Source of the DNA: Adineta vaga
Taxonomy: Eukaryota > Animalia > Rotifera
Reading direction: 5' to 3'
Length of the DNA stretch: 64,000 nt
NCBI GenBank assembly: GCA_021613535.1
Contig: CP075494.1
Location: forward strand, 2,108,001-2,172,000
In this document: positions 24,509 through 33,806 of the stretch, one piece after another
Layout: each line of letters opens with the position of its first letter
Position numbering within the stretch: the first letter of the stretch is position 1
The notes under the pieces: generated by a model
Database searches by the model: none
What the model was told of the DNA's origin: nothing
The model's input: the letters and a program-made list of their open reading frames with translations, nothing else
Program-made: the position numbers and the translations under genes

Positions 24509-26832
24509 TTAATATAGCTCTGCACTATCTAGATAGTAATAGCCAATTCCACCACTAACCAGTACTTTTCCGTTGTTCAATACAGATGCTGTGTGACCGT
24601 AGCGTCCATAATTCATATTCCCTGTAGTTGCCCAAGTTTCTGTTGATGGATCATATAACTCAGCACTGCTGATACCACCTGAGCCAGCATTAACTAATAC
24701 TTTCCCGTTGTTTAATATAGATGCTGTGTGTCTTTCACGCGGTTGATTCATACTACCTGCAGTAGCTACCCAACTTCCGGTTGATTGATCATACAGCTCA
24801 GCACTATTTGTGGATACAATACCATTATATCCACCACTAACTAAGACTTTTCCGTTATTTAATACAGATGCTGTATGACCAACGCGTTTACTATTCATAT
24901 TACTAGTAGTTGTCCAAATTCCTGTTGACGGGTCATATAACTCAGTATCATTTAGCGCATTTGTACCATTAGTACCACCAGTAACCAATACTTTTCCGTT
25001 ATTTAATACAGATGCTGTGTGAATATATCGTGCACTATTCATATTGCCAGTAGGTGTCCAAGTTCCTGTTAATGGATCATATAACTCGGCGCTATTTAGT
25101 GGTGTAATACCAGTATATCCACCGCTAACCAAGATTTTCCCGTCATTTAATATCGATGCAGTGTGATCATATCGTGCATCAGTCATATTACCAGTAATTA
25201 CCCAAGTTAATGTTGACGAATCATACAATTCTGCGTTACTTATTGCAGTACCACTTAATCCACCGCTAACTAATACTTTCCCGTTATTTAATACAGATGA
25301 TGTGTGCCAATATCGTGCATTATGCATGTAAAAAGTAGCTACCCAAGTTTCTGTTGATGGATCATACAACTCTGCACCTTGCGGGTCGCCACCATTAACA
25401 TTGTTAATTCCACCACTAACCAGTACTTTTCCGTTGTTCAATACAGATGCTGTGTGACCGTAGCGTGCATAAATCATACTACTAGTATTAAACCATCCTA
25501 GAAAAAAAAACATATGATTCTATTCAGCTTGTGAAGCATTCAAGGCATGTTTATGAATTTAAGAGAACAAAGTGAACAAAGGAAATCACTGTTATACATG
25601 TAAATTTGAAAGTTATTGAAAAGAAAAAGTTTTCTTCGCTTTTAGACGCACTTACTATCGTGATTTACGTTCAATCGATATGATACTATAACATTGTGTG
25701 AGTCTTCTATATTAGTGCGTATGTCAATATTTAACCCATCGATGTACTGCGACATTTTCTTCTGGCCTGAATGTAAAACGTTAAGTTTTGAATACGCACT
25801 ATCCTATCTATTATTTTTATCAATTATAGCAGATAATCATTGATTATACCAAAAAATAGGAACCTCTACTCAATTTTCTTGCACTTCTTTGATTCTCATA
25901 ATAGAAACAAGACAATATTTGCACATAATGAGAAGAGTTATGAATAGCTAAAATCGACTTACTATCACAACTTATATTTTTCTTTTCCATTTTATCATTT
26001 AAATGATTAGACATCACTTGTCTTCAGGATGGAAATCGTACCCTTAATCGATCCAATTACTTACTTTTTTCAGTCATAAGTTTCTATAAACATATGGGAA
26101 AATTGGTCTATAATTTTCTTCTATATCAAGATTTGAATACTATTATATAGAATATATGAGTCGATTGGATACATCATTTGACAGTCTGTTTAATGTATAT
26201 CAATACACTCCGAACTAAATATCAAAGTCGATCGAACGATAGGTTGCAGTAGAAAACGATAGTAATTGATACCTCAATATTAAAGCAACAAAATGAAAGA
26301 AACAAAGACGAACTCTAACGCAAATAAATTTGAACATCATCCTCCTTTGAATAAAACCTATCAATACCTTTCTGGCAGAAATTTGTCAATGACAATGGTA
26401 AACATACTGCTGATGGTGAACAACATGAGTTAACGATACATACTGATGTATTTGATGCACAAGTATATGTCATATTATTACATGATTCTAAAATTGAACA
26501 CATAATACCAGGTGCACAATAACTGCGATTGTTGAATGAATAATAGTCAAAACATGGTGTTGATGAATGATAACAACTGACGCTATCATTCGAACCTGAA
26601 TTACATTGTTTTAAAGAACAATTTGATGATGTATCGTTAGCAGTATGAATGGACGAATATAATGTAAATCTAGCATTAATCCGATTTACACTGCATGAGT
26701 AGTTAGGCACTTCTGTAGTTTGTCCTAGAAATGATTTATATCATGAAAAAAGTAAAATAAGAAGTAAGAAATATACACACCTTTAACATATAGAAAAAAG
26801 ACGCTCAAAACTAAAATTGTTTTATGTCGCAT
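24509..26832 (-). CDS. Secreted Cys-rich domain + Kelch-repeat protein; exons approx. 26832-26781, 26724-26368, 25497-24509
   Basis: Signal peptide MRHKTILVLSVFFLYVKG, Cys-rich exon, seven highly similar repeats R..HTASVLNNGKVLVSGG...AELYDP.T.TW; in-frame GT-AG joins. Confidence 0.85.
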
Positions 26833-27254: not shown

Positions 27255-27323
27255 TGTGGGTGTGGGTGGACAAGGCTATGGTTGTGAGTATCTTGTATTC
27301 GCCGTCACTCACACCCACACTCT
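27255..27323. repeat. Telomere-like inverted-repeat element, left border of the expansin-GH5 cassette
   Basis: tgtgggtgtgggtgg...gtgagtatcttgtattc...cactcacacccacactct; an extra C-rich half lies at 27204-27238. Confidence 0.85.
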
Positions 27324-27596: not shown

Positions 27597-28700
27597 CTAT
27601 ATCACACCACGGTTGTCACGTTTACTACTGGATCTGCCACGGATGTTACGATTGCTACTGGATCTGCCACGGATGTTACGATTGCTACTGGATCTGCCAC
27701 GGATGTTACGATTGCTACTGGATCTGCCACGGATGTTACGATTGCTACTGGATCTGCCACGGATGTTACGATTGCTACTGGATCTGCCACGGATGTTACG
27801 ATTGCTACTGGATCTGCCACGGATGTTACGATTGCTACTGGATCTGCCACGGATGTTACGATTGCTACTGGATCTGCCACGGATGTTACGATTGCTACTG
27901 GATCTGCCACGGATGTTACGATTGCTACTGGATCTGCCACGGATGTTACGATTGCTACTGGATCTGCCACGGATGTTACGATTGCTACTGGATCTGCCAC
28001 GAACATTATGCTTACTAATGGATCTGCCACGGCTGTCACGATTGCTACTGGATCTGCCACGGACAGTACGGCTTCCACTAAATCGTACGTTCCCGGTTAT
28101 AATGCGAGCCTTTGTACTACCATGATCAGGCAGTGCAGAAATCGTATCAACCACTTGAACTCCACGAATATCAGTTATTCGTATGTGCAATGGTTGATTT
28201 CCAAAATCAGTGCCGACAAAGTGATTGTAGTTCATTTTTTCCAGGTTGATCCACTGACCACCTTTCGAATATTCCAGCTTCACTATCGGAAACTTGTGAT
28301 TGCGTATTTGAATTGCAGCCCAGCATTGACTGCTGCCCTCTTTAATGCGATACTTAAGATTTCTCGAGATTGGTGCTTCAATGACCTTCCATTGAATATC
28401 AATCTTACCATCTGCCATGTTGCCAATTTCACGAAAAGCATTCGGTGAAAGATCCAGTGCTCCACTGGCTCCCTCAGGATACAAATCTGTTACATAGACG
28501 ATTGTTTGTCCTTTTGGTCCTCTTACGCGTAGATAAGCACCAGCCATAGCTGCCTTGACACCCTTGAAATTATATTGAAAAGGATTCAATGCTGTAATTT
28601 TCATGTCAGCTGGGATTGGATCGAGTAAAGCTGCTCCACCAACATATCCAGAACCTGTATATGTTGCATATCCTTTAAATGTATCGTCCCAGTTACTCAT
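27597..28700 (-). CDS. Bacterial-type expansin (EXLX1/YoaJ-like) with C-terminal RGRSSS repeat tail; no signal peptide
   Basis: Colinear with Bacillus EXLX1 as I recall it: GYATYTGSGY.GGA.LLDPIP, VYVTDLYPEGA.GALDLSPNAF, YRIKEGSS..WAAIQ.RNHK, YNHFV. Possible 5'UTR intron 28725-28775. Confidence 0.93.
   Translation of the reverse strand: MSNWDDTFKGYATYTGSGYVGGAALLDPIPADMKITALNPFQYNFKGVKAAMAGAYLRVRGPKGQTIVYVTDLYPEGASGALDLSPNAFREIGNMADGKIDIQWKVIEAPISRNLKYRIKEGSSQCWAAIQIRNHKFPIVKLEYSKGGQWINLEKMNYNHFVGTDFGNQPLHIRITDIRGVQVVDTISALPDHGSTKARIITGNVRFSGSRTVRGRSSSNRDSRGRSISKHNVRGRSSSNRNIRGRSSSNRNIRGRSSSNRNIRGRSSSNRNIRGRSSSNRNIRGRSSSNRNIRGRSSSNRNIRGRSSSNRNIRGRSSSNRNIRGRSSSNRNIRGRSSSNRNIRGRSSSNRNIRGRSSSKRDNRGVI
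27605..28062 (-). repeat. Coding minisatellite, 30-bp unit encoding RGRSSSNRNI (~15 units, 12 identical at 27631-27990)
   Basis: gatctgccacggatgttacgattgctactg tandem array. Confidence 0.97.
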
Positions 28701-30677: not shown

Positions 30678-31763
30678 ATGTTCGGTAGATTACGAGTGAA
30701 AGGCAATAAAATTGTTGGTGACAACAATCATCCTGTTCAACTGAAAGGAATGAGTCTTTTCTGGAGTCAATGGTCCACTCCTTTTTACAATAGAAAAACA
30801 ATATCGTATTTAGCATCGAAGGTCAAATGCACTATTATTCGTGCAGCAATGGGAGCTCAAAGTGGTCAGGATGGCTATCTAGATGGTAATTCGAATAGAG
30901 AGCAGGCCATCCATCAAGTTGTGACTGTTGTTGATGCTGCTATCCGCGAAGATATTTATGTTATTATTGATTGGCATGCACATGATGCCATTCACCATAG
31001 AAATCAAGCTCGACATTTTTTTGTATCGATGGCGAAGAAATATAAAAACACTCCAAATGTCATCTTCGAAATCTACAACGAACCTATCAATGAGCAATGG
31101 CATGAAGTGAAAACGTATGCTGAATCAGTGATTGGTGCCATTCGAGATACAGGAGCTAAGAACCTGATAGTGGTCGGAACACCTTTCTATTGTCAGCATG
31201 TTGATATTGCATCTGAAGATCCAATAATTGCTTTTCGTGATGTGGCTTATAGTTTACATTTCTATGCTGGAACACATCGTAAGAGTGAGCGTTCTAGAGC
31301 TCAAAAGGCTTTAGATAATGGTATTGCTCTGTTTGTAACTGAATGGGGTACGTGCCAGGCTGATGGAAATGGAAATCTTGACCTAAACGAAACTCAAAAA
31401 TGGTTCCGATTTATGGATGAGAACAAACTCAGTTGGTGTAATTGGTCATTGAATGATAAACCCGAAAGTGCTTCGGTACTGAAATCAGACATTAGTCACT
31501 CAAGACCTGCTGGTCCATGGGAACTAAACGAGTTAACTGAGTCGGGAAAATTTGTTTTCAATAAAATATCCAGTGGAAGTCGTAGCAGTCGTGGCAGATC
31601 CAGTAGCCAGCGTAAGAGCCGTGGCAGATCCAGCAGCAATCGTAAAAGTCGTGGCAGATCCAGTAGCAAGCATAAGAGCCGTGGTAGATCCAGTAGCAAG
31701 CATAAGAGCCGTGGTAGATCCAGTAGCAAGCATAAGAGCCGTGGCAGATCCAGTGGAATTTGA
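30678..31763 (+). CDS. GH5 (subfamily 2-like) endo-1,4-beta-glucanase with RGRSSS repeat tail; no signal peptide, intronless
   Basis: QLKGMSLFWS, YVIIDWH, acid/base FEIYNEP, YSLHFYA, nucleophile FVTEWG, SWCNWS. TATATAAA at 30571. Confidence 0.93.
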   Translation: MFGRLRVKGNKIVGDNNHPVQLKGMSLFWSQWSTPFYNRKTISYLASKVKCTIIRAAMGAQSGQDGYLDGNSNREQAIHQVVTVVDAAIREDIYVIIDWHAHDAIHHRNQARHFFVSMAKKYKNTPNVIFEIYNEPINEQWHEVKTYAESVIGAIRDTGAKNLIVVGTPFYCQHVDIASEDPIIAFRDVAYSLHFYAGTHRKSERSRAQKALDNGIALFVTEWGTCQADGNGNLDLNETQKWFRFMDENKLSWCNWSLNDKPESASVLKSDISHSRPAGPWELNELTESGKFVFNKISSGSRSSRGRSSSQRKSRGRSSSNRKSRGRSSSKHKSRGRSSSKHKSRGRSSSKHKSRGRSSGI

Positions 31764-31799
31764 AATAGCCGTGTTAAATCCAGCAGCAATCGCCAGAGC
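31590..31799 (+). repeat. Coding minisatellite, 30-bp unit encoding RGRSSSKHKS (6 units to the stop plus one decayed unit after it)
   Basis: cgtggcagatccagtagcaagcataagagc units; same core as the expansin array. Confidence 0.95.
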
Positions 31800-32233
31800 T
31801 AGGACAAATACAAGTATTGCAAGTAAAAATATTATACTTGTACTTATACTTCAGACAAATACTTTGGTATTACACTTACGTAAGAAAACGCGTTCGTTTG
31901 TTCATATAAGGTGCACCAAATTCAAAAGTCGAGCAAACCTTTTTTGCTGATATTTTTTAATATAGATGGGTATAGCTCGACGAGCTCTATAAAACTTTAT
32001 ATATGAAAAAAAAGACTGATTTTTGGGAGAAACTTTGCTGATTTTTAATTGTTTTGTTACGGAAATGATTTGGAAATAGACTCATTTGATCCATCGTGAT
32101 AAATTGTACCTACTGATACGAAATTTAACATGTTTCATGAAACACTTGTGAACAAACATTTCAATAATAGAAAACGATTCTAGTCAGAATCAACTGATGT
32201 AGACCAACACTCTATGTAGTCCAGTATGATACA

Positions 32234-32299
32234 TTAGAGTGTGAGTGTGGGTATCTTGTATTCACCCACACTCACACCCACACCCACACCCACACCCTA
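32234..32299. repeat. Telomere-like inverted-repeat element at the GH51 truncation point and right border of the expansin-GH5 cassette
   Basis: ttagagtgtgagtgtgggtatcttgtattcacccacactcacacccacacccacacccacacccta. Confidence 0.93.
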
Positions 32300-33342
32300 T
32301 CTTCGGCAAACGTCATTAATTCAATGATTCCAAAGCCTTCGGTGTTGTAGCCTATCCATGATCCTCTTCGACCGGGCCGCGATTGGAGTGGGCCAAGTGT
32401 TTCATTCCAGATGAAACGCTCTGGAATGGAAGGACCTTCGAGATCGTTACCGCCCGGAAGTCGAATAAAGCCAGGCTTGAGATCAGCAAACGCTTGTGCG
32501 ATATCCTTGCGAGCACCATTGATTCGACCGTTATACGTAGGAGGTAAGCATGAGATGAGATTGAACTCAAAATCACCTTTGGATCCTGCAGGAAACTCAA
32601 CAAAAAAGTAGTTTTTCGCAGATGGAGCAGCACTGGGAACAACGATGAGTGAAATGAAATTTACCCAGCTACCTGCGGCAACACTGGATACGTCAACAGT
32701 AGTCGAGCCGTAAGTGATTTGGCTATTTGAGTCTTTCAGTCCAATAGTTAATTTACCACCTGCTACAGAAGCCCCAGCTAATGGTTTGTAGAAGAAGCTC
32801 GAATTGTAAGTTTGAGCTTCGACCTTCATACCGTTGAAACCGAAGTTCATGAAACCTGCGACAGCAGTTGAAGTCGATGTCAGTGAGAATTTTAATTGAG
32901 CCGGTAAAGCGGTAGACAAAGGTTGATCGGTGACAAGGTTGATCGATCCCGATCCGTAGGAAGCCCATCCATCGAGCGATCGGCTTCTCTCTAGAAATCA
33001 CATTTAGGTTAAATATATATTCTGGTAGGAAGGAGGGACAGACTTACCTTGAAAAGCACGATTATAGATGAGCTCAGCATATAAACCGCCATCGTCACCC
33101 CTATTGATGTTGGTCTCGAGAATGACACCATGCATTGTAGATGGAATACTCTGACCAGTGGTAGCATCCTGGATATTGAGTGAAACAGTGTTGGCACGTA
33201 TGCTATTCGAAGATGGCCAGGCGACTGACACTGTCGCTAAAAGTACAGTAATAAAGCCGAATATCGACAGTGAATTCTAAATAAAATCCAATTTAGTTAG
33301 GTGGTTTTCGATACCAAAAACAGAAGATGTACTTGCCTTCAT
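32299..33342 (-). pseudogene. 3'-truncated secreted GH51 alpha-L-arabinofuranosidase; introns 33277-33336 (GC-AG) and 32991-33047
   Basis: Spliced product MKNSLSIFGFITVLLATVSVAWP...ETNINRGDDGGLYAELIYNRAFQ...PGFIRLPGGNDLEG...RPGRRGSW.GYNTEGFG. The frame runs straight into (GGGTGT)n and no downstream exons are visible. Confidence 0.85.
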
Positions 33343-33743
33343 GATTAAGACCTTTCAGAGACACAAACGAACGATAGTATGACGAAACGAATGAAAGAAA
33401 TGAAAACTGAGTGTGATAAGATAAGGGACAATGCTTTATATAGAGGACTGAGCCTCACAACCACTCATTCTGGATATGGCATATTTCTCTGATAACAGCA
33501 GAAAGTTAAATTTAATTTCACCTTTTCATTAAGAACTCTCGCATCAGTGGTTCTTTACGATATCTGCGCATAAGAAAAAATACCGAATGTTCGGGATGGA
33601 TTTCGCAATTGCAAAAGTCAACAAAGTATAGTTAAAAATAGGATGTTCTGAATGAGATTCGTCTAGAAGTTCGTAACAAAATCTGATAACACATTAACTG
33701 TGTTTTAAAGATCAGATCTGACTGAAGACCGGAATGAGAAAGT

Positions 33744-33806
33744 TGGGTGTGGGTGTGGGTGTGATTGTCGTTATTGTCTTCAACTACACGCACCTCCACT
33801 CACACT
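33744..33806. repeat. Telomere-like inverted-repeat element
   Basis: tgggtgtgggtgtgggtgtga ... cacgcacctccactcacact. Confidence 0.8.

Follow-up and report, generated by a model that had tools for sequence, protein, structure and literature searches.

On contig C5 of Adineta vaga, a GH51 arabinofuranosidase gene is cut within an exon, exactly to the base, by a tract of telomeric repeat. The tract marks a real breakpoint with the polarity of chromosome healing, later re-internalised by a head-to-head junction with retroelement-type flanks. What kind of event leaves such a trace? A spare paralogue was truncated, probably with a retroelement reverse transcriptase taking part, and the trace is now a scar inside the chromosome. 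Bdelloid rotifers survive massive DNA breakage and, to our knowledge, carry more foreign genes than any other animal, and the locus bears on the way in which broken ends and stray fragments are turned into lasting parts of a chromosome. Thanks to the intact parent copy, the break can be placed at one exact base, and the locus makes several ideas testable: transient neotelomeres that leave scars, an Athena-type reverse transcriptase in break repair, and the shuffling of gene cassettes.

The gene lies on the minus strand of the window, by which we mean the whole 64-kb stretch analysed (C5:2,108,001-2,172,000), and the break sits at C5:2,140,298 of 16.93 Mb, now internal, with the contig end 2.14 Mb away. 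The genome comprises six contigs and 100.8 Mb, the window has a GC content of about 30%, and introns are short, with GT-AG or GC-AG borders. The assembly is haploid and represents one haplotype; the AV20 haploid assembly of A. vaga has been described as six chromosome-scale scaffolds (PMC8494291). From its ATG at 33342 the gene runs undamaged down to 32298, through exon 1 (33337-33342, ATGAAG), a 60-nt GC-AG intron (33277-33336), exon 2 (33048-33276), which encodes a signal-peptide-like N-terminus with the GGLYAELIYNRAFQ motif and shows 5 differences from the copy on contig C3, a 57-nt GT-AG intron (32991-33047), and exon 3 (32298-32990), which by Pfam holds the N-terminal beta-sandwich region and the start of the catalytic domain. 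As the alignment with C3 shows, the upstream or promoter region on the same strand (33343-33744), with its TATATAAAG box, was duplicated along with the gene. A spliced contig of 2133 nt from run X13, which we guess to be an RNA run, confirms both introns; the contig is of the C3 paralogue's sequence type, and its joints 33276/33337 and 32990/33048 skip 60 nt (CT..GC on the plus strand) and 57 nt, respectively. The initial description of the gene, made in an earlier note from the sequence by itself, as spliced and otherwise undamaged is thus borne out, with the reading frame intact to 32298.

Exons were searched singly and concatenated for codon counting only. Exon 3 is cut after codon 309 of about 673, and its translation passes from ...IIELMTFAED straight into RVWVWVWV and a stop within the repeat; the truncated copy matches the GH51 catalytic domain (PF22848) at positions 1-66 of 239 only. 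A protein ending in RVWVWVWV has no match in public collections, where the best homologue is 68% identical and the Rotaria homologues 51-52%. No transcript specific to the C5 fragment was seen in the public-run contigs, which drop rare variants and among which the only RNA-type contig is of the C3 type.

The intact parent emerged from a whole-genome search as a 99% identical match at C3:17,158,320-17,159,009, within a 597-aa open frame. This gene, whose mRNA is present in the RNA-type run X13, is a fungal-type GH51 arabinofuranosidase with complete domains (PF22848 positions 1-238 of 239, PF06964 positions 1-163 of 165), and the best PDB match of its product is the fungal GH51 alpha-L-arabinofuranosidase MgGH51 (6zps; residues 4-592, E=7e-111), with VEIGNEDWF against VEVGNEDFF and GEF against GEY. 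Its third exon places GNED at residue 299 and GEF at residue 375, and we take the glutamates of these motifs to be catalytic, as the acid/base Glu of the GNE motif and the nucleophile Glu of GH51 (clan GH-A). The C5 copy breaks off after exon-3 residue 230, 69 and 145 residues before these motifs, so the lost half does carry the catalytic glutamates, as had been supposed before the parent was at hand. Unlike MgGH51, the C5 copy ends after the first quarter of the catalytic domain, and because of this it would, to judge from its sequence, be incapable of acting as a glycosidase. It is a partial duplicate, and the other GH51 gene, the intact paralogue that the earlier note proposed to look for, reads straight through the break.

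Window and C3 share a single block of DNA homology, window 32298-33769, which covers 1.47 kb at 96.4% identity. The C3 parent itself forms a 2.7-kb cassette flanked by telomeric-repeat palindromes (L005/L006; C3:17157042-17157090 and C3:17159775-17159887). Homoeologous chromosomes of A. vaga pair as 1-4, 2-5 and 3-6 and differ by about 13% (PMC8494291); C3 and C5 are therefore not homoeologues, provided that the contig numbers match the published chromosome numbers. A dS of 0.05 places the duplicate later than the divergence of homoeologues, and the C5 copy would then be an inter-chromosomal duplicate younger than the genome doubling.

The two copies are identical up to ...GAAGATA, after which C3 goes on with TCGGTGCG and the window with GGGTGTGGGTGT; at the junction itself, ...GATA|TCGGTGCG in C3 stands against ...GATA|GGGTGTGGG in the window. 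Homology stops exactly at 32298, the base at which the gene had been thought to be cut mid-exon by the array, and the boundary is unambiguous because the telomeric hexamer contains no A. Junction microhomology to the repeat amounts to 0-1 nt, the A at 32298 being the one base that a template might share. The G-rich strand prolongs the broken 3' end, which is the polarity of healing. The 3' half of the gene is absent from the 64-kb window by tblastn and blastn, and the search for it elsewhere in the haploid assembly, also proposed earlier, came back with nothing besides the intact C3 gene and old decayed pseudogenes. Since the remainder of the gene does not lie across the element, the site represents a real breakpoint rather than a simple insertion. 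The decayed GH51 copies (C4:9.875 Mb, C3:3.969 Mb and C4:11.12 Mb) have no recognisable arms at their ends; the one at C4:9874964-9876282 (L003/L009), which likewise ends without recognisable telomeric arms, is an old pseudogene with 48-65% amino-acid identity, stops and frame breaks.

What adjoins the break is a 64-bp head-to-head palindrome (32234-32297). On the plus strand it opens with a G-rich arm (TTAGAGTGTGAGTGTGGG, 32234-32251, from the arm scan), which is joined to the 3' flank of a GH5 cellulase cassette, and continues with a loop or leader (TATCTTGTATTCA, 32252-32264; TGAATACAAGATA on the gene's strand), recognised by its recurrence in the genome and by the hairpin fold. The C-arm follows and is, read on the gene's minus strand, the tract (GGGTGT)4-GAGTGT-GGG (32265-32297) that adjoins the break, delimited by TRF, the arm scan and its translation into the codons for RVWVWVWV and a stop. 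The palindrome folds into a perfect 14-bp stem with an 11-nt loop (z=-4.4), and the stem with 32264-32277 includes the GAGTGT variant. The bdelloid telomere repeat is (TGTGGG)n (PMC8494291, PMC7943196). With 33 nt and 5.5 hexamers of the TGTGGG type (5.8 copies of a 6-nt unit at 32263-32297 by TRF), the tract is the longest in the window and the cleanest of its arms, where the earlier note had counted it among the longest and least decayed. GGGTGTGGGTGT occurs 27 times in the window at no more than one mismatch, against 0.03 expected.

The species' own telomere repeat starts at the break and runs with its G-strand 5' to 3' away from the retained DNA, and the distal sequence is lost in the one haplotype assembled. 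The earlier attribution to telomerase healing stands as far as this polarity goes, but the array is not a plain telomerase tract: on the gene's strand, the 5.5 hexamers are followed by an 11-13-nt leader (TGAATACAAGA), then by the inverted arm and then by unrelated DNA with the GH5 cassette, so that the tract is no chromosome terminus. No terminal array for comparison is present at the contig end C5:1-1500 or at the right end of C3.

Arms of this kind are frequent in the window, which holds 35 arm seeds. All 11 clear pairs are ordered G-arm, spacer, C-arm, each arm keeping the healing polarity towards its own flank, and the flanks are biased: an A precedes the arm in 24 of 35 (p=3e-5) and TGA in 7 of 35 (p=2e-5), and TGA follows it in 9 of 35 (p=1e-7). 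The loop is recurrent as well. Allowing one mismatch at most, TCTTGTATTCA followed by CCCACAC is found at 27 sites in the genome and at 0 in the reversed control, and at all 27 a G-arm lies directly upstream, with a joint (GGGTC|TCTTG) that hardly shifts from copy to copy. So constant a joint is not accounted for by end-joining alone, and it makes the hairpin look like a templated unit rather than a product of free end-joining. The expansin/GH5 cellulase cassette next to the GH51 copy is bracketed by two palindromes (27258-27322 and 32234-32297) that share the rare loop variant GTA|TCTTGTATTC and the CACTCACACCCACAC arm pattern; because both carry the same rare variant, there are hints that the two were formed in one episode.

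From where might such a unit have been copied? A hammerhead search combined with a pattern search found six loci with a hammerhead followed by ...GATCGTAGAATGCTTTACTCA-(CCCACA)n-TCAAGAT (L055-L060; C3:17498238, C3:19516160/19516337, C3:19714831, C5:2550184 and C1:16756731), where the hammerhead leads into ...ATGCTTTACTCA-(CCCACA)n-TCAAGAT. Read on the G-strand, this module becomes ATCTTGA-(TGTGGG)n-TGAGT... and reproduces both arm-flank biases of the window. The arm flanks thus appear to fit the 3' module of hammerhead-bearing Athena-like retroelements, composed of leader, (CCCACA)n and TCAAGAT, and the tract was probably made with the involvement of a retroelement reverse transcriptase, be it in addition to telomerase or in its place. 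It is chiefly because of this module that we call the elements Athena-like, as the open reading frame upstream of one C3 hammerhead locus gives only a weak RVT_1 match (E=0.005, below the cut-off).

Endonuclease-free Penelope-like elements (PLEs) prime on 3' ends at deprotected telomeres or double-strand breaks (PMC3846280), Athena attachment to G-rich ends involves reverse-complement telomeric repeats beside a hammerhead (PMC8557442), and PLE reverse transcriptases have been reported to self-prime, forming head-to-head palindromic junctions (PMC3846280, PMC8557442). At the GH51 site, TCTTGTATTCA followed by (CCCACA)n abuts the break, so that reverse-complement telomeric repeats face the G-tailed end as they do at the 3' end of such elements. 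Rfam finds no hammerhead in the window, none lies upstream of the 27 loop copies, which have a G-arm there in every case, and no body encoding a reverse transcriptase is present between 31800 and 32300. The 11-nt loop (TCTCTTGTATTCA) differs from the hammerhead-linked leader (ATGCTTTACTCA), the hammerhead-linked modules have 2.5-4 repeats against the 5.5 hexamers of the GH51 tract, and the GH51 arm has an A before it and TGAATACAAGA after it, without ATCTTGA. Such an arm fits telomerase tailing followed by a short reverse-transcriptase copy of the leader, or internal priming with slippage.

We favour, with moderate confidence, an explanation in which the C5 GH51 copy was broken in exon 3, tailed with G-rich repeats, supplied with a copied leader and joined head-to-head to an end bearing the GH5 gene. 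The copy, made after the ancient genome doubling and endowed with the upstream palindrome arm of the C3 cassette, would first have undergone a double-strand break within exon 3. Telomerase and/or a telomere-attaching reverse transcriptase, of the Athena type among the endonuclease-free Penelope-like elements, would next have added TGTGGG-type hexamers to the sense strand at its 3' end, and about 11-13 nt of a retroelement-type leader would have been copied onto this end. Head-to-head joining to another G-tailed end, the one with the GH5 cellulase cassette, would be the last step in this presumed order, leaving behind, now inside the chromosome, a palindromic scar of 64 bp. Points against this explanation are the leader mismatch, the lack of a hammerhead in the window and of a reverse-transcriptase reading frame nearby, the near-constant loop joint, the uneven divergence from the parent, and a junction that no independent contig was seen to span.

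How does the locus compare with known outcomes of breakage? Chromosome healing at double-strand breaks is known from yeast, ciliates, nematodes and mammals. As in de novo telomere addition, the repeats begin at the last retained base, the G-strand prolongs the broken 3' end, distal sequence is lost, and the junction has little or no microhomology; the GH51 tract differs in that it is 33 nt long, internal and followed by the leader, the inverted arm and unrelated DNA, the healed end having been re-joined instead of staying a chromosome end. Telomere-telomere fusion leaves head-to-head interstitial telomeric repeats, for example at human 2q13, and here too two telomeric tracts face each other inside a chromosome, but the arms are short (16-33 nt) and separated by a conserved non-telomeric loop, and about 20 junctions per 64 kb mark gene-sized pieces, not a fusion of chromosomes. 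Reverse transcriptase can also patch double-strand breaks with retroelement cDNA, as in the capture of Ty1 cDNA in yeast, which resembles the GH51 site in that retroelement-derived filler joins unrelated DNA ends, whereas the filler here is a tiny telomere-repeat hairpin with no stretch of an element body. In bdelloids, both the telomerase healing of breaks and the attachment of Athena elements to exposed ends are established.

With the endonuclease-deficient PLEs of the Athena/Terminon kind (PMC3846280, PMC8557442) the site has in common a leader and (CCCACA)n facing a G-tailed end, and the arm flanks in the window match the module ...ACTCA-(CCCACA)n-TCAAGAT. It differs from them in its leader, which has another sequence and only about 11-13 nt, in lacking hammerhead and reverse-transcriptase reading frame, and in its inverted repeat tracts, where canonical Athena chains give tandem ones. 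In A. vaga lines, a 2026 study found deletion breakpoints bearing telomeric repeats and pieces of Athena elements, and it proposes that neotelomeres form transiently and leave scars behind (PMC13564844); that subtelomeric DNA contains short telomeric stretches among its foreign genes has long been on record (PMC2861651). In the searchable literature we found no description of head-to-head hairpins of this form, in which the loop is conserved, the outer motifs are of retroelement type, and the hairpin marks to the base the point at which a gene with an intact parent is broken.

The history of the fragment can be read in part from its other end. Homology to C3 ends in a second palindromic element (33745-33806, plus strand), whose G-arm (33745-33762) and first spacer part are common to C3; the degenerate C-arm (33786-33806) is not clearly shared, and the alignment past the first part of the spacer is ambiguous. 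The 1.47-kb shared block has telomeric tracts at both ends. Divergence along it is uneven, with 1 difference in the 353 bp next to the break, 11 in the following 340 bp of exon 3, 9 in 307 bp of proximal upstream sequence and 18 in the last 120 bp upstream, or 0.3% at the break, about 3% in the middle and 15% at the upstream end (Fisher p=6e-5), a pattern that one simple event does not explain. The claim that the break is recent agrees with the near-identity beside it but not with the rest of the block, which is diverged by some 3% (dS 0.05).

Over the 309 codons, in which the copies show 17 coding differences, dS is 0.051, dN is 0.0086 and omega is 0.17, a value with which neutral evolution is rejected for both copies together (p=4e-4) and, weakly, for one copy (p=0.017). 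Because an omega of 0.17 rejects neutral drift, the truncation would be late relative to the duplication, and we read the fragment as what may have been a complete copy of the cassette, truncated late and possibly with ectopic gene conversion, which could itself account for the low omega. No recent paralogues of the segments flanking the GH51 copy were found, and neither flank has a C3-linked paralogue. In run X7, one contig joint leads from 33768 back to 32232, carries a single extra G and has roughly the depth of one haplotype; this joint would fit the junction of a circular or tandem 1.5-kb GH51 unit, and its sequence is absent from the haploid assembly. Loose ends at 33745 and 33761, considered as an alternative haplotype, were rejected as a cross-match from C5:1,472,227.

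A more general reading, which we offer only tentatively, sees the hairpins as products of a dedicated break-processing route, in which a PLE reverse transcriptase copying a small hairpin-ended RNA caps fragments that are then joined, perhaps via circular or tandem intermediates of the kind hinted at by the X7 joint. Were this true, gene-sized cassettes, foreign genes included, would be moved, truncated and shuffled along this route, and the GH51 fragment with its intact parent would be the clearest before-and-after example.

The most serious rival, though unlikely in our estimate, holds that the fragment was captured as such: two breaks in C3, in exon 3 and in the upstream palindrome, would have freed a 1.47-kb piece, whose ends were G-tailed and ligated into an unrelated break in C5, with C3 restored from its homologue and the C5 copy never complete. 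That both ends of the block are telomeric tracts, that only 1.47 kb is shared and that neither C5 flank has a paralogue linked to C3 would all follow from capture. The X7 joint fits a circle or tandem copy of exactly that unit, and the rare loop variant common to the palindromes around the neighbouring cassette suggests one episode involving many fragments. A dead fragment should drift neutrally, however, and omega is 0.17; the 3% divergence across most of the block speaks against a recent capture, and the block ends upstream just where the entire C3 cassette has its boundary, as expected if the whole cassette had been copied first.

We give little credence to an aborted ectopic templated repair, in which a broken C5 end finishing with a telomeric arm would have invaded the similar arm that precedes the C3 gene, synthesised 1.47 kb of sense strand on the C3 template and come off within the exon; repeats would then have been added to the new 3' end before it was joined. 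Break-induced extension repair has been reported in A. vaga (PMC13564844), such synthesis would proceed as the sense strand does, 5' to 3', starting at the shared arm (33769) and finishing at the break (32298), and the copies differ most at the end that would have invaded and least at the terminus. A new copy should nevertheless be uniformly donor-like, whereas divergence is about 3% in the middle of the block against 0.3% over its last 353 bp, and the arm homology available for invasion is very short.

Equally improbable is an origin of the palindrome by insertion of a mobile hairpin unit (MITE-like or retro-copied) into the gene, with nothing added de novo to a broken end and the 3' half removed by a flanking deletion or by recombination between two units. 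Such a unit would account for the near-constant joint of loop and arm in the 27 copies, many of which have palindromic outer motifs (ATCTTGA...TCAAGAT), and for arm variants that are mirrored in the GH51 palindrome and in L031 and L022. Yet there is no target-site duplication when the C3 parent serves as the empty site, as a MITE or foldback element would lead one to expect, and the gene does not resume on the far side of the element; the outer motif is missing on both sides of the palindrome at the GH51 copy; the C-arm is about twice as long as the G-arm and begins exactly at the last base of the gene; and all arms keep the healing polarity relative to their own flanks.

Could the junction have been made by the assembler? 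Read evidence was drawn from assembled contigs of public runs, with 32259-32304 left out as repeat. A 577-nt contig, recovered in three separate studies (2013, 2015 and 2022), covers 31715-32258 and about 33 nt into the C-arm, following the path from the left flank through the G-arm and the loop into part of the C-arm. From the other side, a 559-nt contig covers 32305-32856 and 7 further letters, and so ends at 32298, as expected where the assembly graph forks into a C3 and a C5 path. Both sequence types occur at 32857-32913, with depths of C3 type against window type of 137/71 in run X3 and 22/9 in run X7. Among these contigs none was seen to span 32259-32304, the public short-read contigs breaking at the repeat; the junction of gene and palindrome is supported, though short of independent proof. 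A mis-join of two contigs at a common telomeric repeat, to which the breaks of all short-read contigs at 32259-32304 and the single haplotype of the assembly might point, is very improbable, given that the 577-nt contig runs from the left flank into the C-arm in three studies, that the 559-nt contig ends where a C3/C5 fork should, that C5-specific SNPs occur at about half the C3-type depth in X3 and X7, and that the pure repeat is only 25 nt long, below k=31.

Several other features of the window lie close to the GH51 copy. Just downstream of the stop of the GH5 gene, at 31794-31846, is a motif of about 52 nt that recurs at 81-89% identity at at least 7 loci on five contigs. Tandem repeats with a 30-nt unit occur at 27607-28063 (15 copies) and 31568-31789 (about 6 copies) and encode an Arg/Ser-rich tail in two neighbouring foreign-type genes of opposite orientation. 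Finally, a 144/288-nt tandem repeat at 24548-25377, with about 5.8 copies at 72-74% identity, is probably the coding region of a repeat domain.
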